DNA from: Dicyema japonicum
Taxonomy: Eukaryota; Animalia; Dicyemida
Length of the DNA stretch: 33,000 bases
Assembly: GCA_011109175.1 (NCBI GenBank)
Contig: RDEW01000034.1
Coordinates: 424,556-457,555, forward strand
Direction of reading: 5' to 3'
Notes under the pieces: generated by a model
Told to the model about the DNA's origin: nothing
Seen by the model: the letters and a program-made list of their open reading frames with translations, nothing else
Databases searched by the model: none
In this document: in pieces, positions 4,451 to 32,570 of the stretch
Layout of the letters: each line of letters starts with the position of its first letter
How positions within the stretch are numbered: position 1 is the stretch's first letter
Program-made: the position numbers and the translations under genes

Positions 4451-4459
4451 GATATGAGC

Positions 4460-4916
4460 AATTGGTCATATAGCGGCTGCCTTGATTGCGTGACTATTCC
4501 TTCTCAGGATGGCTAGCGAGATTCGCTTAAATAACCAGTAGCGCTCACGGCTCTCATGATCGTGTAGAATCCGATTCCCTAGAATACCCAAGAATTCTAG
4601 GGCGACTATGTGTCAACGCGATTGCAACGAATCAAAAATCTTTGGGTAGGACTTGTAGTTTGCCAGTTTAAACCTCTCGGCCCTCTCAGCAGCAGAACAG
4701 GTTTCATGGCATTCTGGAGTCAGTTACAAGAGGCAAGCGTGTCGGTGCAGAATTCAAGAGGGAAGATTGGCATCCCATCTGGTCGCTTTCCGTCACACCT
4801 GCAAAAGCTGACAGGTTCGAGCATGAGCAATATCTTTCTGTCAGAGGTGAGCAAGTCTTCTGGGGTGTCCGCGGCGTCCAAAGCTCATCTAACGACTTCG
4901 TACAAGGCTATGTGTC
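4460..4916 (-). mobile_element. CRE-like retrotransposon 3' part (RLE domain)
   Basis: Minus strand reads RHIALYEVV, CRCDGKRPDGM and RERYWLFKRISLAILRRNSHAI. Nucleotide similarity to 28575-29020. Confidence 0.8.
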
Positions 4917-5961: not shown

Positions 5962-6569
5962 ATTATTATTATTATTAAAGCACTTTCACGAAAGCCATAA
6001 TGATTATAGCCCCGCATGTGCAACACTCAAAGAAACAATATTTATAGTTAGTCTTTTCTATTTTCCTCTGTCGAATGCGAGTGATCTCAATTCGTCCAGG
6101 TCGTCTCCCGTCTTTAAATTTTTTCTCACACGATTTAAGTCTTTGTTTAGGGCTGTCGGAAGTGTCGATCTAGGTCGTCCGCGGAAGGGTTTTTCGCATC
6201 TGTCAAAGTAATCTTCCATCGCTTTGTTAGCGGGTGCGTCCGGGTTCATTCTTAGTACATGCCCAAATAGCCTCCACCGGGCATCTATCACATCCTTGCT
6301 GATGTTAAGAAACACATACACTTGTTGTAGATACCAGTGGTTGTATTCTACGTGGCCCACTCCATTCCGAGTAAGCTTCTTAGTTGCCTTCTATGGAACG
6401 AATCCAGTTTCAATAGTTCGTTGAAGGAACTTCCCCATGTCCCAGCGTTATACAGTAGGATCGGTTTCACAAACGCGTTGTAAAGCCTGCATCTGATGTC
6501 AATTCCAAGTCCTTTGGCCCTTAGCCATCCTTTCTTCAGTTTAGCCATTGCCGCATTTGCCAGTGTTTT
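5962..6569 (-). mobile_element. RTE-like LINE 3' end running into the gap
   Basis: RLYNAFVKPILLYNAGTW, LDSFHRRQLRSLLG, RWRLFGHVLRM and RGRPRSTLP motifs with a (TAA)n tail at 5962-5976. Near-identical to 8423-9000. Confidence 0.85.
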
Positions 6570-7035
6570 NNNNNNNNNNNNNNNNNNNNNNNNNNNNNNN
6601 NNNNNNNNNNNNNNNNNNNNNNNNNNNNNNNNNNNNNNNNNNNNNNNNNNNNNNNNNNNNNNNNNNNNNNNNNNNNNNNNNNNNNNNNNNNNNNNNNNNN
6701 NNNNNNNNNNNNNNNNNNNNNNNNNNNNNNNNNNNNNNNNNNNNNNNNNNNNNNNNNNNNNNNNNNNNNNNNNNNNNNNNNNNNNNNNNNNNNNNNNNNN
6801 NNNNNNNNNNNNNNNNNNNNNNNNNNNNNNNNNNNNNNNNNNNNNNNNNNNNNNNNNNNNNNNNNNNNNNNNNNNNNNNNNNNNNNNNNNNNNNNNNNNN
6901 NNNNNNNNNNNNNNNNNNNNNNNNNNNNNNNNNNNNNNNNNNNNNNNNNNNNNNNNNNNNNNNNNNNNNNNNNNNNNNNNNNNNNNNNNNNNNNNNNNNN
7001 NNNNNNNNNNNNNNNNNNNNNNNNNNNNNNNNNNN
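6570..7035. other. Assembly gap (466 N)
   Basis: Run of N. Confidence 1.
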
Positions 7036-7194
7036 CGGTAAAAGTCGCTAATTTGGTAGACTCTCAGCTGGTGTTTACCATTTTCTTTTTAATCAACTGA
7101 TCCTCATATATGTCAAATACATGACATATGATATGAGTCTGTGTTTTTCAGTTTTTATTTTTATGACTTTCAAATAAGTAACAAGGCTCTCTTA

Positions 7195-8289: not shown

Positions 8290-10340
8290 AGAATCACGAA
8301 AATCAATTGTAATTAATTAACACTAAGAAAGCTGAATTCTTCATTGTCTTTTCCAAATAATTCTTTTTTTTGATATTCCTTTATATTGTCAGTGTTCAAG
8401 TTAGATAGGTCACATTGTATTTATTATTATTATGGTACTTTCACGAAAGCCATAATGCCCCGCATGTGCAACACTCAAAGAAACAATATTTATAGTTAAT
8501 CTCTTCCATCTTCCTCTGCCGAATGCGAGTGATCTCAATTCGTTCAGGTCGTCACCCATCTTTAGATTTTTTTAAATCTTTGTTTAGGGAAGTCGGAAGT
8601 GTCGATCTAGGGAGTCCGCGGAAGGGTTTGTCACAACTGTCAAAGTAATCTTCCATTGCTTTGTTAGCGGTTGCGTCCGGGTTTATTCTTAGTACATGCC
8701 CAAATAGCCTCCACCGGCCATCATTCACATCCTTGCTGATGTAAGAACACATACACTTGTTGTAGATACCAGTGGTGGATATTATACGTGGCCACTACAT
8801 TCCGAGTAAGCTTCTTAGTTGCCTTCTATGGAACGAATCCAGTTTCAATAGTTCGCTGAAGGAACTTCCCCATGTCCCAGCATTGTACAGTAGGATCGAT
8901 TTCACAAACGCGTTGTAAAGCCTGTATCTGATGTCAATTCCAAGTCCTTTGGCTCTTAGCCATCCTTTCTTTAGTTTAGCCATTGCCGCATTTTAAAGTG
9001 TTCTCCTCCTTAGTACATCTTCAGCGTCTCCTACTAGAGAGCCGAGCTTATTAGTACATCTCCATCTTTCATGAGTAATATCGTCTTCTTTTTTGATTTC
9101 CGTATTTTCAGTTTTGTTTACATTTACGCTGAGAAACCATTTCTCAAGCTCCGCAGGTGCATTTTATAGGTGTTAGTACGATCGCGTCTCGTGATTCGAA
9201 ATCCACATCATCCACATAAGATGTCTTTTCTATGTCTCCTATATAGCATTTACGGAGGTCGCGGAGTGCAGATTCAAGGTATATGGTGAATAGTAAAGGG
9301 GAGAGGGTATCACCCTGGGGTGTCCCAATCTTTGTTTTGAAACTGCGGGAATTGCTCCTTCTGTCTTCACAGATAGTCTTGTGTTCGCAAGTAGTAGACT
9401 GATTATCCTAACCGACGATTCATCCAATAATTGCTCAAGCATATTCATCAGTTTCTGTCTGTTTATTGAGTCAAAAGCTCTGGAGAGATCTATTCCCAAC
9501 ACGGTCGTTGCGCTCTTGAATCTTTGGTGCGTTGCACAGCGCCATCTATGGCTCCGTAGACCTCCCTTCTCGGAACCCACTTTGTATTTGAGTGCAATAA
9601 ATCTTGCAATAGTGGTCATATGGGTTTTCCTTTGTTTTAGGACCCGCAATATTCCTGCCCTTCGAAGACACATTGAAGATTTCCTCTACTTTTTACCTCC
9701 AATAGCTTTTTGCTGATTGCTTCTTTGTCAAATTGTCATATGCGCATTGTGCAGCATAAATAATGTCAGTTATTTCATTCATGTCCGTTGGCGGAGATGA
9801 TGACACATAATTTGATATCACTGCATTTAATGTAATAAGAACATGATTATGGATCTTCTGTGTGGCTAGCAACTTATATGGAATCTTCTTGTGGGTTTCC
9901 TTCCATCTCGGGGAACTGATTTAAATCTCTCAACTTGAACATAAAATTCTTTTTTGCATCTTCCATACATAGAAATTTCTGTTTTTGCTAAGTTGTTCTC
10001 CGAGCGTCCTGATCCGATTAAGCATCTCGACTTTTCTGGTCCACGTGGGTCTTTTTAGGCTTTACATTCAATAGTTTTCTAACGCCGAGTACACCTTTAT
10101 GAGTGGAGAAACGAGCATTGAATTGCTGGACAATGAGACTCCATCCACCCCGAGAGATTCTCCCGAATCTCCTTTTCGCAGAGTTGACAACCATTGAGAT
10201 CCACTCGATCCTGTCACCTGATCGAATCTCAGTGATTAATGCTTTAAGGGACAGCAGATGAGCAGGAACATTTCCCACAGGAGATCTTATGCTAGTTCCA
10301 TTGGCATCATGTAGTCCCGAAGACACACTTCTCACTTCTA
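8290..10340 (-). mobile_element. 5' portion of an RLE-type (NeSL/R2-like) retroelement, interrupted by an RTE-like LINE
   Basis: 8350-8422 joined to 9578-9690 reconstitutes the sequence found uninterrupted at ~26295-26460. Minus strand reads EITDIIYAAQCAYDNLTKK...YWR. Family assignment is from remembered resemblance only. Confidence 0.5.
8423..9577 (-). mobile_element. 5'-truncated RTE-like LINE with 12-bp target-site duplication
   Basis: RT motifs VLGIDLSRAFDSINR, GTPQGDTLSP and YVDDVDF. (TAA)n tail at 8421-8432. TSD CAC(A/T)TTGTATTT at 8411-8422 and 9578-9589. Confidence 0.85.
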
Positions 10341-12000: not shown

Positions 12001-12250
12001 TGTTCAATAATAATAATAAAAAGAGCAAAATTTATTTAAAATTATAAAAATCCAATTTTAGCCAAATCCGGTAAAATTTGTGTCTAATTTCCAAAATACT
12101 GAATAAACTGAATCCTACTCAAGACATGATCTACTGCGGTCTCTAACGGTGATTCAAAAGAGTGCTAGTATATGATTTTACTTGATATTTCCGTACACAG
12201 ATTTTTAACCTATTTTTAATTATTTAATGCCTTTGGCGATATTTTATAAA

Positions 12251-14269
12251 ATGCTGCTTCTTTTGCTGATTTCAACTATACAATCTCGAATAACCCAGTA
12301 TTATATTAATCAAATTATCCAAGGAAAATAGACGTTAAAGTTATACACGAAGATGATGTTAAGGATAAATTTGGTGATAAAATAGGTTTACTTTTAAAAT
12401 TATATCAAGAAAATATGCAAGAAGTTACACCAACACCTTTACCAACATCAACACCAACACCTTTACCAACATCTACACCAACACCAACAACTGCACAAAC
12501 ACTTTCACCAACAACTACACCAACAACTTCACCAATAACTAAAGCGACAACTACACCGACAACTACACCAACATCTACACCAACACCTGCACAAACACTT
12601 TCACCAACAACTACACCAACAACTCCACCAATAACTAAAGCGACAACTACACCGACAACTACACCAACATCTACACCAACACCAACAACTGCACAAACAC
12701 TTTCACCAACAACTACACCAACAACTACACCAACATCTACACCAACAACTACACTAACACCTTCTCCAACAACTGCACCAAAAAGTGAATTAAATGAGGA
12801 CTATGTTGAGGTTCGTATTTTAATAATCTTAAGATTATTAGACAACTCAATAATGAGTCATTATCTTCAAAAATTAATAAGAAATTATCAATTATCGAAG
12901 AGATGAAACCAACAAAAACATTCAAAGAAACTCTCGGGGATATTACTTGGATCGATCAAATGGATTTAAAATCAGGATCTACTATTTCCACCGATTCAAT
13001 TGCAGTTAATATACATCATAATGAAGCAAAGGGAGACGGTATGGCAGGATTAACTATCTTTAGCTCGTATTTTAGTTATTAAAAATAATGAAACAATTAT
13101 CGATGGTAAAGAAACCAAACAAATCGATAGAGTGGTGTCAATAATTTTTAATAATGAAAATAATAACACCGAGAGTAAAATCACTAAAGTGACTATTTTT
13201 TTCCAAGATATTATTCAGAAAATGCGGTATAACTATGTATGTGTTTATTGGAATAACGGATTATGGGATAATGAAACTATGAAAACGGAAATTAGTTCAA
13301 ATGACAGTGTAACATGCACTACTGAACATCTTACTAGCTTTTCAGTCTTATTCGTAATCTTTTATATAAATTTAGAATTCCAGAAAAGGTCAATTAAATT
13401 CTAAAAAGACAGCAACCTCATATATCACCATTATTGGATTATCTATATCAGAAATTTCAATCATTACTTCATTTATTATTTTCTTTAATCAATTCAAGTT
13501 CATATTTACTTAGTTTAGACTTTTAATTAAATCTCAGATTCAGTTGACGTTGATTAACCTTGAAATATCAATTTTCATAACAAATACTGTTTTTATATTC
13601 GGAATTTTCTCAGGATTTGAAAAATCTTTTATTCAATGTGTCACTGTTGGAGCACTATTACATTATGGGCTACTAACTCAGTTTTTCTGGATGCTTTCCC
13701 AGACAATAATTCATTATATAAAATTCATCAAAGTTATTGGCATGAACATTAATAATCTGATTTTAAAGATTCTTACAATTAACTGGGGTTAATCTTTGTC
13801 ATAATTTGCAGGAATACCTCTGTTAGTAGTCATTATCATAGGTGCAGTCTCAAGAAATGCGTATTATTCGGATAACAAGTAAAATTTGATTCAATATTTA
13901 AGATGTATGTTGCATGGAACTGCATTCTACTTGGGCCTGTTAGTTCCATGTGCAGTTATTTTTTTAATTATCACAATTTTATACTTTTACATTTTTTACA
14001 AATTCATTTATTACAAAATAAAACTAAAATCATTCCAATTAAAAAAATCAACAAATTCAATATTAATTTTCTTATTTTTTCTATCGGGTTTATATTTTTT
14101 ATTATTTGCAGGAATTAACTGGTTTTTGGCCTTTTTCCTTGAATTTGATAAATTTAAAATAATCGAATACGTCTTCTGTATTTTAGTGTGTCCACAGGGC
14201 TTAATTATTCTAATATTGAATATTCACAATAAGCGAAAATTCAAGCAGATTCCCACCCCACTATGGTAA
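12251..14269 (+). CDS. Adhesion G-protein-coupled receptor (signal peptide, Thr/Pro mucin stalk, GPS, secretin-family 7TM), multi-exon
   Basis: Starts MLLLLLISTIQS. Frame is restored by introns 12298-12323 (26 nt), 12811-12833 (23), 13039-13063 (25), 13354-13375 (22), 13498-13518 (21), 13788-13811 (24) and 13879-13902 (24). In-frame introns are probable at 12386-12409 and 14088-14111. GPS reads CVYW..W..CTTEHLTSFSVL; TM motifs include ALLHYGLLTQFFWML, NWGIP, GINW and PQG. The C-terminus is uncertain and may extend by further splicing to ~14507. Confidence 0.9.
12424..12780 (+). repeat. Coding tandem repeats of the mucin-like stalk (~96-102 nt unit x ~2.5, plus short TP units)
   Basis: AQTLSPTTTPTT recurs three times at 32 and 34 aa spacing. 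TPTPLPTS occurs twice. Confidence 0.9.
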
Positions 14270-14494
14270 AAATTACAAAAGGATCAACAACTGCACTGTC
14301 AAGTTCCCCAATGACTACACCAATGACCACACTCACGTTTAAATGATTAGTTATTGTAGGACGCCTTTATAGGTATTTTAACAATAATTGATTTATACAG
14401 TCATTATATTAACTTGCTTTAAAACATTTTACCCTTTGTAAAGTTGTGCATGTACATTTCAGCTGGAAAGAATGGAGCAAAATTTTCCCGGATT

Positions 14495-15990: not shown

Positions 15991-16732
15991 TGGGATATCT
16001 GATCGACAAAACACACTAAAACCCTATTTTTACCAATCTTACAAAGAAAACTGTCAAAATTCACTCGATATTGTCGACAATTCCGTCAAATCATTAGTTT
16101 CCAAAATCACTGGGGTAATTTTTTTTTTTTGAGTATAAAATTTTTTTTAACAATTAAACAAATGTCAGTTGAGGAAGCCTGCTGCGTGGATTGCGAACGA
16201 GTTCCCTCGGAGTATGGCTATTCCGATCTTTTGTCTTAGCCATAACCCTTCTCGTTGATCCCTTTTCTTTCTGGCAAGCTGGTGTAATTAAAATTATATT
16301 TTAGCATAATTTTGTGTTGATTAATGAATCAGAATTTGATCATTCACGACTTCCAAGGGTTGTTGTGCAAACTGCAGCTCATGTTTCAGGCTGTGCTTTC
16401 CTTCACAAATCAACGAAAGTAATTATGATCCTTAATATAAGAAGCTCATTGGTGTCTCAGTACATCCTAAATATGGACTTTTTATGAGTTTGAGGGGAGT
16501 TTTGATATTCCCCTACGTGCTGGTCCCTGATTTTGTTTACAAGGAGCCTGTTAAAGTAATCACTGATTCAACGAAAGAGGAGAAGCTGATATTCGAATTT
16601 AACTTCAACTCTAAGACTAATGAGTTTAGGAATATTCAAGAGTTCCAAGAAACGTACTCTAATGAACAACTCCAATATTTTTGACTTCCCACTTCTCAAC
16701 GACCACAGTTTTTATTAAATCTATTGAAATGA
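15991..16732 (+). pseudogene. MMACHC: MMACHC/CblC cobalamin-processing enzyme homologue, apparently disabled
   Basis: Exons ~16001-16114, 16305-16418 and 16442-16732 give TLKPYF..LDIVDNSV, RLPRVVVQTAAHVSG, IGVSVHPKYG..SLRGVLIFP, FNFN and ETYSNEQLQYF. Lesions: in-frame TGA at 16682, probable 2-nt frameshift near 16013, and a retroelement at the 5' end. Confidence 0.85.
16121..16278 (-). mobile_element. 158-bp CRE-like 3' tip with poly(A), inserted at an MMACHC splice donor
   Basis: Minus strand reads RDQREGLWLRQKIGIAILRGNSFAIHAAGFLN* followed by poly(A). TSD CTGG(G/T)GTAATT at 16110-16120 and 16279-16289. Confidence 0.85.
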
Positions 16733-17690: not shown

Positions 17691-18012
17691 ACTAATTCTT
17701 ATGTCACATTTGTATAAAGAAACTGAACTGGTTATTGTCAACAAAGAACCGACTTGTTTTGCGCTGACGGACAAAATTAGTCATCGAATTGTCATTTCGG
17801 TTGAAAATTAGAATTTATTTTAAAATTATATTAAGACCAATTTTGTCACGCGGGTGGAATAATTGGTGGATTGTGAACAGTGATGAAATGATTTGACTGA
17901 AGAACAGTAGAGTCTACTGGAAATACACATTTGTTGGTAGAATTCAATAATAAGACTAATAATTTCCTAAGTTATTGGGTTATGAAAATAACAGTCAGTA
18001 ATAATCAAATTA

Positions 18013-19321
18013 TTAGAAATAATAGGATAAGGCTCCGTCTGAAGGAGTGACCTCCATTATAGTTGCCACTCCATGATACAAGTTCTATTAATATTTACAA
18101 TATCAAACGTCAATTCCCTCAACAACTTTATTCACAACATCAGAGTGAAGAATTGCCACAACTGAACCCACCACCTGTCATTCTTGCACCATATACTCCC
18201 TCGAAAGAACAGACAATGTCTTTCAAAGAATCCAATTCCTTACAGTAGACCTCATAATCATCCCTAATAATATTATTTACAGTTTACTTAAGAGAACGGT
18301 GACTTCCACACAAAAGTGATCCCAACTTTCTTAAATCCCCCGTTTTTAGAACTTCCAATGATTCCAAGTATCTATTAATTTCAGAAACGGCATGTCGAGC
18401 TCTCTTTTTGAGTATTAAATGATCATTTAAAGCTAAAATATAATTATTAGTAAAACACTCAAGATTTTCAAGTTTAGCTTGTCTATAAGAAGTAATTCCC
18501 ATAATATAAAGTGCCTCCTTACATTGAGAACGCCTTAAGGCATACTCTGATGTGGCAAGTTCATGCTTCACGTTAGAATTTATAACCAAGACTACAACAT
18601 TAGGGAAAGGAATTCTTTTAAACTCACGTGTTCTTTATGTTAATAAATCTAATACAAGCAATCTATAAAGATCACATTTCCATTTTCTCCACTAAAAGAC
18701 ACCAGTTGGTCCATTATTCCACAAGGAGTTCCAGCAAACACGTGTTCGGCCTTTTGGCATAGTAAGGCTTTGTTGAGTAAGGTTTGGTCATTTTCTAGAG
18801 GACCAAAGATTTTTTCAAGGAATAAATAGAATGCGACTTCTATGGAAGCAGAACTTGACAATCCTCCCCCAATTGGAACGGATGTTGAAATAACAGCATT
18901 AAATGGTAATATTTTATCTATATATATTACTTGGTAGTACCCTTAAAATAAACAAGGACTCCTTTGATGTAATTAGCCCATTTCGGTGTACCAGGAACAA
19001 ACCATTGTGATAAATCAGAACATTCTATAACATGAGGGACATCAACATCAGTGGACAAAGTAATCACTGCACTCTGATCATTATGAGAGGGTGATCCAAC
19101 AACAGCAGTAACTAATGGTATTGTCTAATTTTTATTTATTAAATAACTATAGGAAGAACATATCCGTCATTGTAGTCGATATGTCCTCCAATTAGATTGA
19201 CTCTACCAGGTGCGACAGAAATGACTTTGGGGGTTGTTTTAAAATGTTCTGTGAACTGATTGATTGCCTGAGATTTGACTTGTTCTATTGATGTTAATTC
19301 CCTTTGGTTATATATCAACAT
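18013..19321 (-). pseudogene. GALK1: Galactokinase (GALK1-like), 6 exons, frameshifted in the C-terminal glycine-rich motif
   Basis: Motifs [56 protein letters not shown] and GARMTGGGF. Introns at 19125-19147, 18918-18940 and 18633-18655 (23 nt each), and 18264-18287 and 18085-18108 (24 nt each). Frame breaks at ~18165. Confidence 0.88.
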
Positions 19322-19466
19322 ACTTTAATGGCATTTAATTACTGAACGTATCTTTTAAATATAATGGTCATACTAAGGCGTGTCAAACCACATATTCAAT
19401 TAATATCTAAAAAAATAATATAAATAATTTTATTTTTTTGAATTAACCTGGTAGCATCCACTAAGG

Positions 19467-21557
19467 CAGGGGTCTAAAATCAATCCAGATCGATCGTAAG
19501 GGGGTCGAAAATGAAATATTTGGGGGTCGAAAATAAATTTAATATATTTAATCTTTTTCAATTTAAATTAAGTTAGTTTATTTTTAAAGTGGAAAACCTT
19601 TGTTCTTTAAAATTTTTAAAATTACCAGTTTGTTTTTGTTCGTGTATGAAAATTTTTAAAATTACCATCGTTTGGGTCTTCCGACGTCTATGGTTGGAAA
19701 ATATAAAGGATTTAAGGCATATTTGAAAAAAATATGTCCAAATGTGATTCATATACATTGCGTTTTACATAAACAACATTTGGTTTCAAAAGCTCTTTCG
19801 CCAATTCTACATGAAACGTTAAATATAGTTATTAAAACGATAAACAAAATTAAAGCATACAGCAAGTATGAACGTCTTTTTAAAAAATTTTGCTATGAGG
19901 CTAAAGAAACATATTTCCGTCTTGTGCTTCACATTGAGGTTTTAGTTTCCAATTTTATTTTACAGATACGATGGTTATCAAAGGGAAATGCATTAGAACG
20001 ATTTTCAATATTATTTGACACAATCGTAAATTTTCTTACTTCTGAAGGTGATAAAAATTTAGCAGATTTAATTGTTTAGAAAAAGAAAGAAATTGTTTAT
20101 TTGACTTGGATTTTTGGAAAATTTGATGAAGTTTCATTAGAACTTCAGGGAAAGTATGTGACGTTAATAGATTGTAAAAGAATTATTCAAATATTTATTG
20201 AAAAAATTAAGTTATATAAATATATTTTGGAAAAAAGAAATTATTATAACATTCCCGAATTCTAATCAATTGGTCAAACATTTGATGAAGATATTAAAAA
20301 TTTTTTGCAACATTTATTAAGTATAGAAAGATTTGATTCTTCGATTCCAAGATATTCTTGAATTAGAAATTCCATCTTGGATGATTAATCCGTTTTTGTC
20401 AAAGCCAGAAGAACATAAAGAAATTATTAAAGAGGAATTAGTTATGTTAAAATTCAATCCAGAATTAAAACTATATTATAATGATTCACAATCACCTGTT
20501 ATTTTTTGGCAAAATATGAAAGTGAAGGAGAGTTATCCAAAATTGTGGACAGAAATAGCACAATTGCTACTCTATTTTCCGACATCATACTGTGTTGAAT
20601 GCGGATTTAGCATTCTACATCGAATTGTAAATAAAGAACGAAACAGATTGGAAGTGTCCATTAGAGGAGATCTTCGATTAAAAATAACACAAATAGAGCC
20701 AGATATCGAATCTTTGATCAAAAAACACCAGTCACAGGGATCTTAGTATAAATTTTATTATAGATTTATACTAAGATACCAACTTAACATCGAGTATATA
20801 CTTTTTTTGTTTTATTTGATTATTAACAATGAATTCATTTTAGATAATTAACTAATTTTACTTAGAATTAAAGTTTGTCAACCCCATGAGTGCCGATGTG
20901 GCCGGAAGGTCGACTGCTATGGACATCATGCCGTTTCTTGTCGAAAAAGCGCAGGTCGATTCGCTAGACACAAGGCTATAAATGAAGTGGTGAAGCGCGC
21001 CCTCGAGTTGGCGGGATACCCATCCATTCTAGAGCCAACGGGCTTGAGTAGGGATGATGGGAAGCGACCCGATGGAATTACTGTCTTCCCCTTCTCTCGG
21101 GGCAAATACTTAATTTGGGATGCTGCCTGTACTGAGAGCTTTTCCCAGTCGAAACTTTTGAGGTCGGCAATGAAAGCGGGAGAGGAAACTCAAAAATAAA
21201 GAAATACAGCAGCCTCCTAAACCGTTTCCATGTACAGCCAGTAGTCGTCGAGACGAGCGGAGTCTTTGGCCCCAAGACGGTCTCTTTCCTTAGAGCACTT
21301 GGGTGTCTATTGACCAAAGCCTCGAGGGAGCGTCGGGAAACCGAATGGCTTTTCCAAAAGATATCCCTGGCAGTAATCAGAGGTAACAGCCACTCGATCA
21401 TATCCGCTGGACTCTAGAACGATTTTATTGTTATAAATAAATGTTTACTTAGAATTATCTGTTCAAAATAAAAAAGTTTTAAGGGGTCGAGTAAATATTA
21501 GGGGGGTCGAAAAAAAAGTCAAGGGGTCGACGAGTAAAAAAAGGTTGAGAACCCCTG
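19467..21557 (+). mobile_element. Buster-family hAT DNA transposon, internally deleted and non-functional
   Basis: Ends CAGGGGT...ACCCCTG with perfect 8-bp TSD CACTAAGG (19459-19466, 21558-21565; NNNTANNN pattern). GGGGTCGA subterminal repeats at both ends. Motifs HCVLH, RWLSKG, FPTSYCVECGFS and RNRL..RGDLRL. Confidence 0.95.
20871..21443 (+). mobile_element. 5'-truncated CRE-like retroposon nested in the hAT
   Basis: PHECRCG..GHHAVSCRKSAGRFARH, DGKRPDG, WDAAC and ISLAVIRGN. 14-bp TSD TTTACTTAGAATTA at 20857-20870 and 21444-21457. Confidence 0.9.
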
Positions 21558-21573
21558 CACTAAGGTCTCACCC

Positions 21574-24401
21574 TAAATTGAAAAATGTCATGTGGCTCGC
21601 CGACGACGTGGTGGCATTTGGAAAAAAACCACACTTTCCCCTATCTTCACGGGTGGACTAATAAGGAAGACCTGCGCCGCTGCAGAGACGTTAAGGCAAA
21701 CCCTGGACCATCCAGAATAGTCTAACTAAAACATAAATGGAATCAAAAACAAGATAATCGAACTTGGGACATTTGTGAAAGAAAATCACATTGATCTGTT
21801 GCTAATTCAAGAGTCTAAACTTTCTCCAATTCACAGTAATTTGCCGTGACAGAATTGGCAAACTTGGTGGGGGTCTTCTCACAGTTATCCGCAACGGCAT
21901 TCCGTTTGAGGACTTAACTAACAGTGCCTACACTATGCTTAAAGGATATGGAAATCTCGAACTTTTGGTTACCAAAGTACGATTCCCAAGACTATCAATA
22001 ATAATTGTCAACGCATATCTCCTACCGTTGAGTTCCTGCTCGTCCAGTGCTCCCAGACTCACTCCTCTCGCATCACTGAAGGATGTGATTATCTGTGGTG
22101 ACTTCAATGCGAAGCACCCACTGTGGCTGACAGGACAAACCTACGACAAAAGAGGGAAGATGATAATTGAGGACCTCCACAGCCTATGTATACTCAACGA
22201 TCCTGCATCTCATACAAGAACACCTACTCGACGTAACGATAAACCTTCTATCGACATCTCATTGTCATCACCGTCCTTGGCCCCACTTATTGACTGGTCA
22301 GTGAAGTATGACACCAGTAGTGATCACAACCCAATATTTTTGGAGGTCAAAACAAGGTCACGGATAAAAGGACAATGCCCAACAATAACTAACTACAGCC
22401 TTGCAAATTGGAAAGGATTCAAGGAATACGTCGATAATTGTATTGGACTATTAAATTTCCCCACTTTTCCCTCCGTCGAACAATTAGTGAAATGGTTCCA
22501 TTATAAACGATGCGAAAAAGAAGTACATTCCTATGGGGAGACAACCAACGTCATCAAAACGTTTCAACACAACGACGAAACATCTGATCGGAGAACGAAA
22601 CAATCTAAAGATGGTAAAATCGCCAACAGAAGAGAACATCAGGAAAATACGAGAATTGAACAGAGATATCGACAACAACATAAAGACAGAAAATGCAAAT
22701 AGATGGACGAGACTATCGAAAGCTCTCTACAAAAACCCCCCAATGCCAAGAGTGTGAAAGTGGATCAAAAACATCAAAAGACCCTCCCCAGAAAGAAAAG
22801 TCGAAGTCTACATAAAACCAGACACTCTGATAAAATATTACACATCTATATCCTACAGGAAGTTTTCAAAAGAACACCAAGTATTCCTGAAAAAGATTGA
22901 ACCGAAACGCTCCGATAACTGGATCCTATTTACTAGTCAGGATGTTCGCAGAGCCATATCTAAGGCCAACAACTCAGAGGCCAAAGGACCAGACAACATA
23001 ACCACATGTGAACTGAAGCACCTAGGCCATCGAGCCCTGGAACTATTAGCCTATATATTCAACCTCTCCATTAACACAAATACAATCCCTGAAATATGGA
23101 AGAAGTCTCTAATCAGACCTATCCGAAAACCCAACAAACCAATAGATGAACCATCTTCCTATCGCCCAATATCTATTCTAAGTCCGGTCTCAAAAATCCT
23201 TGAAAGTATTGTTTTGGAAAAAATAGAAGACTCAAACTCAATACCTCCGACCCAGCACGGATTCCGGGATAACCATTCGACCACAATACACCTTACAACC
23301 CTCACACAATTCATTGCGGAAGAATTTAACTCCCCCAAACCCCAACAGTACTTATATCCGTGGACATCATAAAAACGTTCGACTCAGTCCCTAGGAAACT
23401 TCTAAAAAAGAATATATTTGAAACCAACATTCATCAGAGACTGAAACTTTGGCTTGGAAACTTCCTAAATAGAAGACGAGCACAAGTACTCTGTAACAAC
23501 ATCAAATCAGGATCTCGCTATTTTCCAAATGGAGTCCCTAAAGGCTCCCCACTATCACCCCAACTCTTCAATCTTTACATAAACGACATGCCACAAACCT
23601 GTAATGAAAACTGTCTAATCCTCTCATATGCCGACGATATCATTCTTGCCTCCAAGGACAGAAACATTCAATCAGCGACTCAGTTGGCTCAACAAATGCT
23701 CGATAACTTGGAACTATGGCTCTCGAAGCGGAGACTTGACACATCAGCAGCAAAGTCCTTTGTCACACTGTTTACCACCTACAAGAGACAGCTCTGTATC
23801 GAACCAAAAGTCTTTATGAAGAACGAAGCTATCTCTATTAACAAAACACCGAAGATTCTCGGAGTAACCTTTGATCAGGGACTCACCTTTATCCGGCATG
23901 TTGAAAACAGAGTAACTTCTGCTCTGAAAAAATTAAGAATTTTAAAAGTGCTCTCAAAAATATTTAGAGATCAAACTGGGATCCTTGCCACGATTTACAA
24001 ACAATTCATCCGACCAACGATGACGTATGCAAGTCCTTCATGGGCAATGCAAATGTCACGATCTTCCACATTGAAGTTATCTGCAATCGAGGAGACTGCA
24101 ATAAGGTTAATTGGACCAGATCACAACATCCAACCTATTGAAAATTTTTTAATTGAAATACAACGAAAACTATTAAAGGAGGCTGTTCTACCGAGCTGCC
24201 CTCTATTCCAAATACTATCGAATTATCTACAATCATACAGAAATTGTGAGCCGATGCCATGTCCTATGAGAAGAGCTGTTCAGGATTTTCGACCCCGCCG
24301 GACTCGTCCTCACCTTTGTCGGTCTGGGATCACTTAGTTAGATGAGAACTTTTATTTCTTTCTCTTTGACCCAGTGATCATGGGGGTAGTAATAATAATA
24401 A
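21574..24401 (+). mobile_element. Near full-length 2.8-kb single-ORF APE+RT LINE (Ingi/Vingi-like), frameshifted
   Basis: 13-bp TSD TAAGGTCTCACCC (21561-21573, 24402-24414) and (TAA)n tail. APE motifs LIQESKL, GDFNAKH and SDHNPI. RT motifs SYRPISIL, QHGFR, GVPKGSPLSP, YADD and KILGVTFD. 2A-like CRDVKANPGP at 21681-21710. No ORF1 or RNase H seen. Confidence 0.92.
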
Positions 24402-24414
24402 TAAGGTCTCACCC

Positions 24415-26470
24415 GATCCCAAAAGGATCAAAAATAGCCAATTTCTCCCCACCCGATTGGATAAACCCATGGAGTGGTTTCTCGACTTTTGTGCCGAGTA
24501 TCTCTGATCTCATTCCTTCTAATTAACGCTTCAAGATAGTGTAAGCAAGCCCATCTTTATGTACCTCAACGCGCAGCTCTGTCGATTTAATCTTCGAAAG
24601 TTAAGGATGGTTTCTCAGTTGAGATGGTAACCCTTGGACAATTTTCTTGCTTTCGAATTACAATCAGGTTCACGTCTGTTCTTGGGCACATCAGTTTTCG
24701 GCATATCCTCCAGAAATTTGCTTGTCATATGTCCATTATCTCCATGCTACATCAGCACGTAGAATCCAAGAAATTTAAGTTAGCCTCTTCACATTACCGC
24801 TCAGTCTGTCCATGATATATGTTAGTTCCTTGGACTTTCTTTCAAATGCACCTAGGATATCTTCACATTTTGTGTCTTTCATCCTGCTTTGCATGATCTT
24901 TTCATCTATCATTTTTTTCTCACCCCTTTGCCTGTCTTGTTTCACACGACAATCATCTTTTCTTCTCACAGAAGGAAACTGCTTTTCTAGCCACTGGGCT
25001 GTCACCATAGCTCTCTCTGTGACTAGTCGACTCGCTGTTGATAGACAATTTTCCGTTGGTTTGTACCGAACACTTCAAAAGACTATGCAATGTAGGCTAA
25101 GCATTTCTTGTCCCATTGCAATTTCTTTAAAAGTGGACCAATTGTTGACAGTTGTATCATCTTAATGGCCTCCTGGTCTATTCGAACGTTATATGGCCCA
25201 ATTGAGAATCCCAAACGTATCTGAGAGGTGGCTTCAGTGTTAGGATCAATTTTTCCATTGGTAGTATCACCCAATCTCAGAGGAACCTGTATTTGTATTA
25301 TAATATGTTGTCATCCACCAAGAAAAGGATATTCTTTAATATAACCACAGATGGTCTGGAAGTTGCCTCAATGACTTTGTGATTTCCAATCCCGAATGGC
25401 GATATAGTGTTTAGTTCCACTATGAATTTCTTTTAATCCTCCATATCTTTAAATTCACATGAAATGACTTCGGTCCTTTAAACGTGAGACGAGCGTCATT
25501 TACATTTGCTAAGCTCATCGCTGAAATATCAGTTAGTTGCCAACTTTGTTTCATTTAACTCCTCAATTTGGGGGACATCATAAAACTGTTGATTAGAACA
25601 GAATTGATATTCGTCATTTTACGTAATTTTACACTTTTTACACGAGAAGGCTTGATTACACAATTTTGAATTATTTTATTATTAAACCTTCTCAGGGATC
25701 GACCTTCTTACAACCCACAGTTTTCAGAATTGGAAAACTTGTCCCTTTGTATCACCCTTACTGTTCCGCTCGTATACCACTTGAGAGAGCAAATCACTAG
25801 ACAAGACAGCTGTTTTTCTTGATTCCTCTTCGACGTCACCTCCGAGTTCAGAGCCTTTTGAGATAAGATGATTAGTCACTCTTGTAACCTCATCATCATC
25901 GTTTAATTTTCAGTCCATGTCTCTGCTCAATTATCATGCTCTTTAAAGTTTTTTAATCGTCATCGATTGGATTTACGCCCTTGTAGAGACATCCACGTTG
26001 AGTTTTTCTATATAGGAATTTACAACTTCGTTATGTTGCCGTATATACGCACCGCTAAGCATCCTGGTACACCGTGTAGCCATGTGATCCACACTTTTTT
26101 TTGGCCACACCACAATGACTGAAATTTGCTTTCATCTTTTTAAAGAACAGATTCCGATCCTGTATCATGCAGTACATTGCTTCCGACCTTAGACTATTGT
26201 TTCCCCCAGTGAGCCATTCTGTTGATCCATTGATGTCAACATTCGTATTTTCAAATCACTTAAATATAATTAAATGAAGCAATTTCTGATTAGTCTTCTC
26301 CAAATAATTCTTTTTTTGATATTCCTTTATATTGTCAGTGTTCAAGTTAGATAGGTCATCCACATTGTATTTGAGTACAATAAATCTTGCATATGTGTTT
26401 TCCTTTGTTTTAAGGCCCGCAAGATTCCTGCCATTCGAAGACACGTGGAAGATTTTCTCTCACGGTCGGT
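24415..26470 (-). mobile_element. Composite degenerate RLE-type retroelement remnants
   Basis: 26020-26230 on the minus strand reads WLTGGNNSLRSEAMYCMIQDRNLFF..SVDHMATRCTRML..YIRQHNEVV, homologous to 15091-15290. 26295-26460 matches 8350-8422 plus 9578-9690. The identity of 24415-25950 is less certain. Confidence 0.55.
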
Positions 26471-26581
26471 AAATAATTAAAATAACACTTACTCTTATCA
26501 GAAATTGAGATTAATGTTTTTCCAAAGTATAAATATATATAAAATATAATAAATAAATAAATAAATTAAAAAATAAATCAC

Positions 26582-28138
26582 ATGGTAGTAAAGTCATATG
26601 GTAAGGATAAGCCAAAGCAAATAAGAGAGAGTAATATATCATCAGGGAAAGGTAAAATGTAATAAATATAAAAGCTGTGTGTGATGCAGTAAGAACAAGT
26701 CTTGGACCTTGTGGAATGGATAAGATGGTAATATGAATAATAAAATAGATTGTCGGAGAGAAAGTATGTGTATCGAATGATGGTGCTACAGTATTGAGTG
26801 AGATGAAGATAAGTGAGCCTGGTGGACGAATGATGGTTGAATTATCAAAAGGACAGGACGTAGAGGCAGGAGATGGAACAACAAGTGTAGTGATAGTATG
26901 TGGTAGTTTATTGAATGCATGTAAAGGATTATTGGAAATGGGTAAAAGTAAATTTAATGTTAGGATTGAATGCTGGATTAATAAGTGAAAGTGTGAGAAT
27001 ATTTGGTAGAGAATGTTGTAAAGTAATGAATGAAATGTCAATAATGGGAGAAATAGGTACAGATATAGCATCAACAGCACTAAATTCAAAAGTAGCAAAT
27101 TGTTTGTCGTCATTGAGTGTTGATGCAATAAACAAAGTGAAAAGTGAAGATAATAGAGTGGATATTGGAGATATTAGAATAGTAAGTGAAATGAGTGGTA
27201 CTTTGGAAGATTCACTATTATTTGATGGACTAATATTTGAAGGAAGTAATCCACAGACACAATCAGGAAAGGTTGGGTTAATCCAATATTGTCTTTCTCC
27301 ACCAAAATCAGATATGGAGTTTACAGTAAATGTGTCAGATTATACACAAATTGATAATGCATTCAGACAAGAACAGTCATATATTCTTAAAAGAGTAAAG
27401 GCTATTAAGAATGCTGGAATAAGTCTTCTTTTAATTCAAAAATCAATTTTGAGGGATGCAACTAATTCAATGGCACTTCATTTACTTAAAAAATTAAATA
27501 TTACAGTGATTAGGGATGTTGAACGAACTGATGTTCCCATAATATGTAAAGCATTTGGTTGTAGACCAATTCCATCACCTGACCATCTCCTTCCTAATTA
27601 TTTGGGTTATTCTCCTTCCATTGTTCACAAAAACAAACAATTATATGTCACTTGTATTCCTAATGCTAAGGTTGTCTCTATTCTCCTTAGAGCCTCTAAT
27701 TCTATTATTCTACAAGAGGCTAAACGTTCACTTCATGATGCTCTTTCTGTGTGTAAATGTCTTGTTGCTCATCCAAGAATTCTTCCTGGTGGAGGAGCTG
27801 TTGAAATTGAATTATCCCTTGCACTGGCTAAATATGCAAATACACTCAATGGACCTAAACAAATATGTATTAATGCCTTTGCTGAGGCTATGGAAATAAT
27901 ACCTTATACTCTTGCTGAAAATGCCGGTCTTCCTCCTATTCCAACCGTTACTAAACTACGTAATGCTCATTACAATAACAAACATATCGCTATTATTGCT
28001 AATAAGGCTAATCTTGGTAATGCCATTGATAACCACCTTGTTCATCCTATTTCCGTTTTTATTAATATCATTACACTCGCTTGTGAAACTGTTGCTAATA
28101 TTATGAAAATTGATGATGTCATCATTACTAACTCTTAA
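26582..28138 (+). CDS. CCT4: T-complex protein 1 subunit delta (chaperonin CCT4)
   Basis: Spliced N-terminus [34 protein letters not shown], then [56 protein letters not shown] and KIDD. Introns at 26652-26674 (23 nt), 26728-26748 (21) and 26942-26963 (22). Confidence 0.95.
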
Positions 28139-28554
28139 CTTTTTTGGTCTTTCTAATTTTTGGTCTTTCATTCTTGTACACTTCAACTATCCGCTTACCA
28201 AACAGATAGACATTCCATACGTTTTACACCTAGTCTACACATACAGGCGGGTACGAGTACTAGGCAAACGATATACTACTATCGTCTTGTCATCCTCCAA
28301 GCGAATGGATTATAATAAATCCGTTTTCTGAGTCAGTCGAAAATTCTGAATGTATGATTTTTCTTATTTTGGAATTGGAATAAATAAAAGTCAGTCTGAA
28401 TAACAACATTGACAAAAATCGTATTTCAAGTCAACCAAATATTATAGACAGCAAAGCTAGCTTCATGGAATCGTCGAAAATCATTAACACAATAAAGCTT
28501 CCAGAAAGAGAAAAATAGATGTTTATAAAACTTAATTTATCCTCAAATTTTTTA

Positions 28555-29545
28555 TTAAGGAACGAAAAGAGAGTAAATGGTCATATAGCGGCTGCCCTGA
28601 CTCAGGATGGTTAGCGAGATTCGCTCAAGTAAATAGCAGCGCTCACGAGGGTATCCTGATCGTGTAGCTATCCGCTTCCCTAGAAGATTAAAGAATTCCA
28701 GCGTCGCAGGCACAAAGGAACAAGACGTCTCAACGGCGAGTGTAGCAAACAAAAAATCCTTGGGTAAGACCGCTACTTTCCCCGTTTTATTTTCTCTGCT
28801 TTCTCAGCGGCAGAACAGGCTCTAGAGGTACTCTGGAGTAGGTTGCAAGAGACAAACGTGTCGGTGCAGGTGACATCCCAGACAAGAGGTTTCCCGACTT
28901 CAAATAGGAAAATTATCATCTCATCTGGATGTTTCCCGTCCCGCCTGCAAAGACCGACTGGTTTGGGCTTGGCTGCGTCCAAAGCTCGCCTAACGACTTC
29001 GTTCAAGGCCATGTGTCTGGTAAATCTGCCTGCACTCTTCCTGCAGGAGTGAGGATGTAGGCCAAAACAGTCGATTTCGTCTCGGCACGGATGTGTAACA
29101 CAGACATTTGATCTCAGTCTTAATGAGATCCCAATACGGACGCATTTATCATTTACAAAGGTACTCAAGAAGGTACCCAAGGGCGATGTTTGCTAGATGA
29201 CATTAACAAATCTTCGAAAGAATTCTAGCATATAGCATTGTCCAGGCCCCGCTAAGAGAATGAGGAATCTAGGGAAAGCTGATAAGTACGGTTCTAGTCC
29301 TCACGAGCATGGCCGGCGTCTTTGTCAATAGAGAATTCTGGTAGAGAGTGTAGAATCCTCTTAACAAGGGTGTTACAGGCCATTAGCGACGATAGATATC
29401 CAGGGAGAGAACGGTCTACAGGGTTGCGAATTCCAAGCCCTCCAGTTTCACTGGCAGCGTGGCTTGCTTCCATTAGTAATCCTTAGACCGGACGTTGAGG
29501 ATACACTCCGCTGTCGTACGGAAGATCCCGTTATCTATGCGAGAA
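28555..29545 (-). mobile_element. CRE-like retrotransposon 3' ~1 kb
   Basis: QATLPVKLEGLG, HPHSCRKSAGRFTRH, RDGKHPD, VWDVTCTDT and RERCYLLERISL. Colinear with 1140-1726 plus 4460-4916. Confidence 0.85.
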
Positions 29546-30760: not shown

Positions 30761-31111
30761 TCCATATTCATCAATTTTTTTCATAAAAAACTTTCAACGT
30801 AGTCAAAAGTTTTTTGATTACGTCGATCCAAGTAAAGTTCAAATTGTTTCAGTTTCGTTTATTTAAGGATTTGTTGACGATTTGCTCCTTGACACATTCT
30901 TCGAGTTCCCAGTTGATTGTCACTTATCAAGTCGTATAATTCAATATATTCTGATAATTTTTTGTTCACACAATTTGTCAATTGTTTATACTAATCAGGT
31001 ATACAAGTGATTGACCTTCACTCTGTGGGTGAATCACAACTACTTTTGGAATTAGGTACGTAATCCAAGTATAGAACCAATCACCAGGCCTATATTATCA
31101 GGTATAATCTT

Positions 31112-31900
31112 CTTTGCGCTATGCTGACGATACAACCTTACTGGCTGAGACAGAGGATGGCCTCAGGGAGTTTATTCTAAGATTCCGAGAAGAGAGCGCC
31201 GTCTTTGGTTTATTGCTAAATATAAAGAAGACCAAAATTATGACTACTGCTAATAATGGAATAATGGAACTAAAAATTGGGAATGAGAAAATAGAGAGTT
31301 GCAATAATGATGTCCTTCTGGGATGTCTAATTAATCGGAATGGTGACGGAGGCTTGGAAATCAAGAGGCGAATTGTTATGGGACCTTCCAGAGAATGAAT
31401 AGAATTTGGAAAAACAACGATATTTGCTTAAGGCCCAAATGCAGACTGGTTAATGCAATCGTGTGCCCGGTTTTTCTATACGGCGCAGAATCATGGATAC
31501 TGAAAAAGGCGGATAGACGAAAAATTGATGCTTTTGAGCTGTGGTGCTGGAGGAGGTCACTAAGAATCCCTTGGACTTTTAAAATAACAAACATCGATGT
31601 ACTCAAACGGGTAGAGACGGACATTTCGCTAGAAGGAAGAATCGTAAAACACAGATTGGCGTTCTTCGGGCATGTTGTCCGTTCTGATTTACTGGAAAGA
31701 ACCATTATGCTGAGCAATATTACTGGAAAGAGAAGACCTGGCCGACCGAGGACTCAGTGGCTATTCACGGTGGAAGACGTCACGGGAATGCCTATATCAA
31801 GGCTACTTCAAATTGCAACGGATCGGGAAGAGTGGAGGAAACTCGTTCATGAGATCTCCAAGGGTCGGACACGACTTAATTGGACAACATAACATAATCT
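31112..31900 (+). mobile_element. RTE/BovB-like LINE 3' fragment
   Basis: RYADDTTLLAE, GLLLNIKKTKIM, PVFLYGAESW..KADRRKIDAFELWCWRR.LRIPW and GKRRPGRPRTQW. Confidence 0.9.
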
Positions 31901-31904
31901 TAAT

Positions 31905-32570
31905 TTTTTACAAATATATCCATTAATCAAAGTGAAGCTTTTGATTTAAAAAATTATAGACTTCATCAAAACCAGATGCCTTTCAATATGAAGCATCTTT
32001 ATAGTTTCAATAATTTCCTCATTTGTAAAATCAGCAAAAAAAATTCTCTGATCCTTTCACTCTTTTGCTAATTAAGAAATTGTTCTTTTTTCGCTTAACC
32101 ATATTCCAAATGTTACTCTAAAACGGGAAGACATTTCTCCTCATTGAAATTAAGGACCGCCTTCTTATTATCTCCATTTATATTTCTATGCAATCTCCTT
32201 CTATTCATTTCGAAGTAACAATTAGCACTCTAAATCTCTATCTCGATTCATAAACTCCCATCTTTTTAACAATCTTGATTTGATCGCGAACATAGGAAAA
32301 AACCCTCTCAAATTCTCCCCTCTTCGATTTTAAAAGCCATGTGAGCGTAAGGTATTGCGTAATTTTTTCGTCAAATATCTTCGTTCATTTCACTAGCCGT
32401 TGAATTCGCTCAAGTTGTTGCTTAAGTTTAGTGACCATGTCCATATCCAGAAATATCTATAATTTTTAAAGTCAATAAAGTGAATTTATTCAAATTTTCT
32501 AATTCATAAAGTCAAAAAATCGGTCTACTGATTATTTATTGGTAAATCGACCTATAAGTGACAATACCAA
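31905..32570 (-). mobile_element. Degenerate retroelement remnant (region just upstream of RT)
   Basis: Minus strand reads DFTNEEIIETIKML..KASGFDEVYNF, resembling the pre-RT KAxGxD motif. Confidence 0.5.

Follow-up and report, generated by a model that had tools for sequence, protein, structure and literature searches.

A mirror-image purine/pyrimidine strand bias that reverses within a single CCT4 gene of Dicyema japonicum

The window analyzed here is a stretch of 33,000 nucleotides from Dicyema japonicum (GenBank assembly GCA_011109175.1, contig RDEW01000034.1, positions 424,556 to 457,555 of the forward strand; all coordinates below count from its first nucleotide). It contains a gene for CCT4, the delta subunit of T-complex protein 1 (TCP-1), within which the composition of the DNA strands forms a mirror image. 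Over the first ~0.7-1 kb of the sense strand C has been lost and A and G have been gained, over the last ~0.7 kb G has been lost and T and C have been gained, and both parts have been driven to a very low GC content at silent sites. The pattern is that of a long-acting, strand-asymmetric substitution pressure whose polarity reverses in mid-gene. Strand composition asymmetry is a standard record of strand exposure in replication, transcription and repair. A mirror purine/pyrimidine bias of organelle-like strength that is confined to one nuclear gene is unusual in kind, and its cause is not settled. The skewed unit and the gene within it are composed as follows.

26520 to 28200, forward strand: whole skewed unit, equal to the CCT4 gene plus very short flanks.
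26500 to 27230, forward strand: 5' zone with a purine-rich, C-poor sense strand (A 41%, C 7%, G 24%, T 28%).
26528 to 26535, forward strand: putative TATA-like element TATAAATA that precedes the ATG by ~50 nt, its function being proposed from the sequence.
26582 to 26651, forward strand: CCT4 exon 1, with the ATG at 26582.
26652 to 26674, forward strand: CCT4 intron 1 (23 nt, GT..AG, no C).
26675 to 26727, forward strand: CCT4 exon 2, from the gene model and the open reading frame (ORF) search.
26728 to 26748, forward strand: CCT4 intron 2 (21 nt, GT..AG, no C).
26749 to 26941, forward strand: CCT4 exon 3, with the NDGAT and GDGTT motifs (Pfam Cpn60_TCP1, E=2e-20, profile positions 22-82).
26942 to 26963, forward strand: CCT4 intron 3 (22 nt, GT..AG, no C).
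26964 to 28138, forward strand: CCT4 exon 4, 1175 nt unbroken, stop codon TAA at 28136-28138 (Pfam Cpn60_TCP1, E=2.8e-84, profile positions 120-488).
27215 to 27580, forward strand: switch zone, ~350 nt wide, from change-point profiles.
27530 to 28200, forward strand: 3' zone with a pyrimidine-rich, G-poor sense strand (reverse complement A 37%, C 14%, G 21%, T 28%).
28141 to 28169, forward strand: two exact copies of TTTTTGGTCTTTC, 16 nt from start to start, the first beginning 3 nt past the CCT4 stop.

The CCT4 reading frame (26582-28138, forward strand; four exons, 496 codons) is intact and free of internal stops despite the AT-rich DNA, and the same gene model was recovered by an independent splice-aware, intron-tolerant ORF search. 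The nucleotide-binding motifs LGPxGMDKM, NDGAT, GDGTT and GGGA are present, in an alignment of the first 215 residues with CCT4, 93 of 155 conserved columns are identical, and every named protein among the best 120 database matches is a delta subunit of T-complex protein 1 (identity 41-51%). The gene uses the standard genetic code and resembles metazoan genes. Its nearest database match reaches 51% identity, and 60 animal CCT4s, which share on average 79% identity among themselves, are on average 50% identical to it; of the columns invariant across these 60 proteins 75-81% are kept here and 19-25% are changed. The predicted product is thus that of a genuine CCT4 with an intact frame that is evolving very fast. 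No myxozoan occurred among the listed CCT4 matches (best 120), and the exon-4 ORF had no record in the contig collection searched. The top-scoring match, P0001 (a hypothetical protein of Ladona fulva, 630 aa), repeats its residues ~210-300 at ~539-630. This partial internal duplication, apparently a fault in the annotation or assembly of the record, inflates the score; P0001 was rejected as a close relative, as its high score is due to the duplicated segment in the insect gene model. The TATA-like element TATAAATA sits within an (ATAA)n-like A-rich tract (26529-26578). At the other end of the gene the paired copies of TTTTTGGTCTTTC may be a candidate 3'-end processing signal; no AATAAA motif occurs downstream of CCT4 before 28314, where the first of several is found.

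An earlier note on this DNA, made from the sequence alone, had pointed out the switch from hand counts of bases, and these counts proved to be exact (57 G and 13 C in 26761-26940; 19 G and 45 C in 27901-28080). In 200-nt windows, the GC skew lies between +0.45 and +0.70 over 26500-27199, is close to zero over 27200-27500 and takes values of 0.00 to -0.34, mostly -0.14 to -0.34, over 27500-28299; the AT skew also switches sign inside CCT4. The two biggest composition jumps of the entire window are located at 26501 and 27531, and the C content of 26501-27200 (6.3%) is the lowest in the window (mean 19.2%, standard deviation 3.8). When the 5' zone was compared to the reverse complement of the 3' zone, the k-mer frequencies correlated with r=0.98, 0.87 and 0.72 for k=1-3, versus 0.41, 0.41 and 0.37 when both zones were compared directly. 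Each strand of the unit is accordingly purine-rich at its own 5' end. The flanks, described in the same note as A-rich on the 5' side and T/C-rich on the 3' side, obey the same rule as the gene when analyzed in 30-nt bins. Long stop-free frames occur on very purine-poor strands, namely at 26511-27128 on the reverse strand (205 aa, antisense to the CCT4 5' zone) and at 24400-25340 on the forward strand. The former was rejected as a gene and is a side effect of too few purines for stop codons; such composition-driven frames could mislead ORF-based gene callers.

At a resolution of 30 nt, purine richness begins at ~26500-26530, at the TATA-like element, and pyrimidine richness ends at ~28200, ~60 nt past the stop codon; the skew stops at these two positions and is not continued into the flanking DNA. 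Between the two plateaus the change is staggered: C returns to first codon positions at ~27215 (support 27188-27251), whereas A/T, C and G at third positions flip at 27517-27580 (support 27457-27595). The earlier note had put the crossover near 27300-27550. A logistic fit to the purine content of all sites places the midpoint at ~27395 with a width parameter of 112 nt, and a plateau-switch-plateau profile described the data better than a straight gradient (log-likelihood, lnL, -1163.2 vs -1167.9). The switch centre lies only a few tens of nucleotides (~35 nt) from the midpoint of the unit at ~27360. Intragenic 5'-to-3' gradients, e.g., of third-position GC content (GC3) in grass genes, are gradients in GC content that are common to many genes. 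They resemble the situation in CCT4 in that codon usage shifts systematically along one gene, but here purines and pyrimidines are reversed, and in one gene as far as the window shows.

An artefact, i.e., a chimeric join of paralogues, alleles or co-infecting species, or a misassembly, might produce an abrupt change as well, and for the all-site purine content a single-step model was indeed not significantly worse than the smooth one (lnL difference 1.2). The window also contains an assembly gap elsewhere. However, the support intervals for first and third positions do not overlap, and both the frame and the CCT4 alignment cross the switch zone without gap, duplication or frame break, the alignment gaps found elsewhere being short and scattered. 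In addition, the two halves are equally diverged and share a very low silent-site GC content. Because of this staggered switch, unbroken alignment, equal divergence and shared composition a chimeric join is unlikely, and as it would further require two relatives with opposite gene-wide biases, an artefact appears to be the least probable of all explanations considered.

The switch persists at silent sites. At 4-fold degenerate sites the composition is A67 C1 G10 T20 in codons 1-250 and A16 C15 G2 T62 in codons 301-497. Compared directly, both parts are clearly different (p=3.5e-15), whereas the two cannot be told apart when the 3' part is replaced by its complement (p=0.59). The 4-fold GC skew amounts to ~0.8. 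Codon choice follows, as the earlier note had proposed for synonymous codons: from the 5' to the 3' part isoleucine changes from ATA 12/ATT 3 to ATT 18/ATA 3, valine from GTA and GTG (17 of 21) to GTT and GTC (11 of 12), serine from AGT (13) to TCT/TCC (9 of 10) and leucine from TTR (13 of 17) to CTY (15 of 21), and the choice of alanine codons flips too. As the swaps between AGT and TCT for serine and between TTR and CTY for leucine need multiple steps, the pressure must have been acting for long.

For comparison, three other genes of the window, located 8-14 kb away from CCT4, were used.

12209 to 14343, forward strand: secretin/adhesion-type seven-transmembrane (7TM) receptor, a G protein-coupled receptor, in the same window.
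16003 to 16681, forward strand: MMACHC, in the same window.
17849 to 19395, reverse strand: GHMP-kinase/GALK-like gene, in the same window.

A change-point test on third-position purines yielded an lnL gain of 36.1 for CCT4 (permutation p<0.002) and of 1.6-2.5 for GALK, MMACHC and the receptor (p=0.28-0.50), which bears out the previous impression that these genes lack the switch. Both parts of CCT4 differ from the pooled neighbours at 4-fold sites (p=9e-9 for the 5' part, 5e-6 for the 3' part), and the GC content at these sites is 0.11-0.18 in CCT4 and 0.24-0.29 in the neighbours. The latter display a mild excess of C over G at coding-strand 4-fold sites, and since this mild bias is shared, the 3' zone resembles an extreme form of the local norm. 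The three introns of CCT4, all of which are located in the 5' zone, contain no C in 66 nt (A36/T20), whereas introns of the neighbouring genes have about as much A as T and ~10% C. They had been noted before as A-rich and lacking a pyrimidine tract; the former holds, but the latter is general to such ultra-short introns and not specific to CCT4. A missing polypyrimidine tract is typical of ultra-short introns in genomes of this kind, and introns so short have been reported only for myxobolid myxozoans and D. japonicum (PMC13644364). The introns of the neighbouring genes are mostly 19-26 nt long, and the resemblance of the 21-23 nt introns of CCT4 to these indicates that the gene is native to this genome.

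The encoded protein has been changed in the same direction. The amino-acid drift mentioned in the earlier note, including the replacement of HPT by NAG, was recovered as H108N, P109A and T110G, and from the 5' to the 3' part the residue counts rise from 0 to 8 for histidine, from 4 to 12 for proline and from 10 to 18 for asparagine. Replacements were then scored at columns conserved in at least 80% of the 60 animal CCT4s. In the 5' zone C was lost (C>G 14, C>A 13), and changes from pyrimidine to purine (38) outnumbered the opposite ones (21); in the 3' zone G was lost (G>A 19, G>C 12, G>T 8), with 39 changes from purine to pyrimidine vs 15 in the other direction. Conserved columns were retained to 60% in the 5' half and to 57% in the 3' half, so that divergence is equal. 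The bias has been so strong that many conserved amino acids of CCT4 were replaced.

As silent sites, introns, flanks and protein all shift alike, the cause acts on the nucleic acid and does not reflect translational selection on codons, which is ruled out by the matching bias in introns and flanks. The pressure is mutational, or at least operates at the level of nucleic acid. The latter would include selection on RNA or DNA for halves that avoid local self-pairing or pair with each other, and that introns and flanks, being in or beside the pre-mRNA, share the bias would fit such a selection, as would the predicted fold of the 1635-nt mRNA, in which 259 of 493 base pairs join the 5' and the 3' zone. 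However, in shuffled sequences preserving the composition of the zones the minimum free energy was -341.5 +/- 10.9, compared to -352 for the mRNA, and the long-range pairs numbered 209 +/- 29, giving no indication of sequence-specific pairing. The cost of such a selection would also be large, with 19-25% of otherwise invariant columns changed, and the neighbouring genes show nothing alike. Selection for RNA or DNA structure is thus regarded as rather improbable. No known RNA families or tRNAs, which might have imposed an antisense constraint, were identified in the whole window.

The reach of the bias on either side of its centre is also relevant to another possibility, recurrent double-strand breaks in mid-gene, at which 5'-to-3' resection would expose opposite strands on each side. 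Resection extends over roughly a kilobase, and such a hotspot would be expected to give a bias reaching ~1 kb to each side, with mirror symmetry around a mixed centre. However, the bias is not strongest near the centre but holds or grows outward and then stops abruptly, and deamination of exposed strands predicts enrichment of T where enrichment of A is seen. Recombination hotspots furthermore usually raise the GC content (PMC2927911), which is very low here at silent sites. A break hotspot is therefore considered very unlikely, only slightly less so than an artefact.

The left boundary of the skewed unit coincides with the end of a repeat copy. On both sides CCT4 is flanked by transposon remnants, as follows.

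26253 to 26460, no strand assigned: left-flank copy, internally deleted, of a repeat found again at 8300-9687; between its end and the onset of the skew lie ~60 nt.
28571 to 29192, reverse strand: right-flank retroelement remnant; further copies lie at 4456-4916 and, in inverted orientation, at 1186-1727.

The left-flank copy comprises ~200 nt of a ~1.4-kb element, and a stretch of 48 nt is 100% identical to the copy at 8300-9687, indicating that the insertion or deletion of this repeat is recent. From its end at 26460 to the ATG of CCT4 at 26582 only ~120 nt of unique DNA remain. Because the repeat on the left is young, the extent of the skew can be judged only on the right side; there, the segment 28200-28570 has no match elsewhere in the window and is unskewed. 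These boundaries bear on whether chromosomal replication could have generated the pattern by a fixed origin or fork-convergence site in the middle of CCT4, at which the asymmetry between leading and lagging strand flips. Skew switches at bacterial origins and termini, in organelles and at mammalian origins resemble the pattern in CCT4 by a change in the sign of GC skew at a point and by mirror-image sides, and the equal-sized symmetry and the step-like change observed here would be accounted for. The left boundary might be explained as well, as the young transposon copy would be too recent to have gained the bias. However, the skew ends at ~28200 although the following DNA up to 28570 matches nothing else in the window, and the genes 8-14 kb to the left, which should share the polarity, have weak and mutually inconsistent skews. 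Replication skew switches span kilobases to megabases and are weak and mostly of the G+T type in eukaryotic nuclei, replication-linked skews in mammals being of this type; the effect in CCT4 is confined to ~1.7 kb and of the purine/pyrimidine type. To our knowledge, no nuclear replication skew approaches a 4-fold GC skew of ~0.8. A fork-polarity switch within the chromosome is hence judged about as improbable as selection on RNA structure.

The earlier note had favored a gene-sized unit that is replicated inward from both ends. Its description of halves that are purine-rich at their own 5' ends, of a bias at synonymous sites and of neighbours without it was confirmed, but no structural mark of a replicon was found. 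According to this explanation the CCT4 unit is, or for a long time was, a small extrachromosomal or nanochromosome-like molecule, and each strand would carry the same replication-linked bias in its own 5' half. The equal and opposite 4-fold compositions would then follow from one process acting on complementary strands, the switch zone would be expected near the midpoint of the unit, from which it deviates by no more than ~35 nt, and both the restriction of the skew to ~1.7 kb with neighbours lacking it and the superiority of the plateau-switch-plateau profile over a gradient would be in line. Dicyemids have been reported to possess small circular DNAs and to undergo chromatin elimination and selective amplification (PMC6543705). 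A likeness exists to ciliate nanochromosomes, which, according to Prescott and Dizick 2000, Cavalcanti 2004 and Ricard 2008 as cited in PMC5863220, are gene-sized units whose sense strand is rich in A and purines at the 5' end and in pyrimidines at the other, so that the sign of the purine skew at their ends is the same. The ciliate bias described there is, however, far weaker and shorter, amounting to ~8-18% over 40-200 nt of non-coding DNA next to the telomeres, whereas the bias in CCT4 fills the coding region; the CCT4 unit also lacks telomeric repeats, uses the standard code, is metazoan-like and is embedded in a chromosome.

Searches within the window argued in the same direction. No terminal inverted repeat pairs the ends of the unit, the flanking direct repeats are imperfect, only 12-17 nt long and at chance level, telomere-like repeats of several types were absent from the whole window, and the unit lies among transposon copies on one contig. 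Since a germ-line copy would not carry telomeres, their absence leaves room for a somatic nanochromosome form; a somatic amplicon, in turn, would leave no trace, as only changes in the germ line are inherited. The dicyemid circles are mostly ~700 bp in size and non-coding or mitochondrial (PMC6543705). It is therefore unlikely, albeit somewhat less so than the explanations above, that an inward-copied replicon is, or long was, the form in which the germ line propagates CCT4 and perhaps a class of housekeeping genes, or alternatively that CCT4 sits on a fixed pair of origins only ~1.7 kb apart.

We infer that the most probable source of the mirror bias in CCT4, with a probability of roughly 0.45, is an asymmetry coupled to transcription. 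The process might be an asymmetry of transcription-coupled damage or repair in a gene with strong germ-line transcription, with each half of CCT4 being dominated by a different polarity or regime. In one version, the 5' half would be shaped by sense transcription from the promoter at the 5' end and the 3' half by antisense transcription entering from the 3' end. In another, a promoter-proximal regime, e.g., an exposed non-template strand or R-loops favored by purine-rich RNA, would give way to a distal regime of repair asymmetry further along the transcript. The earlier statement that transcription cannot change sign in mid-gene overlooks both antisense transcription and the difference between promoter-proximal and distal regimes.

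Several observations are consistent with a role of transcription. The skew begins at the TATA-like element and ceases ~60 nt after the stop codon, with 28200-28570 unskewed, which would be the footprint expected of a transcription unit. CCT4 is a constitutive housekeeping gene; that the three genes at 8-14 kb lack the switch fits a dependence on expression, GALK, MMACHC and the 7TM receptor being probably genes of low expression. The lower 4-fold GC content of CCT4 compared to its neighbours would fit a mutation load that is raised locally. Asymmetries associated with transcription have been described and are not the same in all taxa (PMC2927911), and GC skew downstream of promoters has been linked to R-loops (PMC3787257). 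CCT4 resembles these cases in that its skew begins close to the presumed start and stops close to the 3' end, that past the promoter G exceeds C in the sense strand, and that silent and intronic sites are involved. It differs in that the sign reverses in mid-gene, that the amplitude is many times larger (4-fold GC skew ~0.8), that purines and pyrimidines rather than G+T are affected, that the DNA is AT-rich and not a CpG island, and that amino acids are dragged along.

Some of these differences weigh against transcription as the source, together with further points. A transcription asymmetry is expected to keep one sign along the transcript, whereas the skew reverses at 27215-27580. The equal magnitude of the halves and the central position of the switch are not predicted by the two-regime version, and under the antisense version an essential gene would have to be transcribed more in antisense than in sense over its 3' half. 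The excess in mammalian transcripts is of the G+T type (PMC2927911), in contrast to the purine/pyrimidine skew of CCT4, and the C-poor 5' zone is A-rich and not T-rich, so that simple deamination of the non-template strand fails to explain it. As the first AATAAA is located at 28314, the transcript may outrun the end of the skew at ~28200. The left boundary of the skew is also the end of the young transposon copy and thus cannot separate the models. Finally, the case is built on one such gene, whose transcription unit is presumed.

The GC content of the window is 36.6%, and for the D. japonicum genome a GC content of 36.7%, 49% repeats and assembly gaps have been reported (PMC6736024); stranded libraries are also available for this species (PMC6736024). 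The gap within the window (466 N, ~6570-7040) is surrounded by a repeat with duplicates at 6009-6567 and 8457-9002 (89-95% identity). A retroelement neighbouring CCT4 is the following.

21935 to 24337, forward strand: long interspersed nuclear element (LINE) with endonuclease/reverse transcriptase (EN/RT).

Together with this element, fragments of LINE-type endonuclease/reverse transcriptase and a recurring Cys/His-rich retroelement domain were found at 411-935 (forward strand), 28434-29192 (reverse strand) and 1186-1727. The best database relative of the LINE reverse transcriptase shares only 37% identity, so that this repeat family has essentially no representation in public protein data. 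Between GALK and the LINE, at 19478-20848 (forward strand), ORFs with a weak match to the hAT-family C-terminal dimerisation domain (E=4e-4, below the Pfam cut-off) may be left over from a transposase or belong to a domesticated gene.

The only other strong skew of the window, at 12250-13000, is unrelated to the effect in CCT4: it corresponds to a Pro/Thr-rich, mucin-like repeat with a period of 12 nt (ACA CCA type) at 12415-12800 (forward strand), which encodes an extracellular part of the 7TM receptor and has a GC skew of -0.6. The second-ranked jump in purine content outside CCT4 is located at ~31840-31880; across the RT-like fragment at 31000-32500 the GC skew changes from +0.26 to -0.30, and the jump is probably the junction of differently oriented repeat pieces.

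The asymmetry in CCT4 is statistically overwhelming, roughly equals that of the most biased organelle genomes, reverses exactly on itself in mid-gene and has altered much of a protein that is otherwise highly conserved. Should a gene-sized replicon or paired origins turn out to be true, this would represent a new kind of animal genome organization, with a nanochromosome-like skew of unprecedented strength in a metazoan nuclear gene. If, in line with the preferred role of transcription, the bias scaled with expression across the genome, CCT4 would illustrate, as an extreme natural example, how transcription-associated mutagenesis can shape proteins, and the same process could partly explain the notoriously long branches of these parasites.

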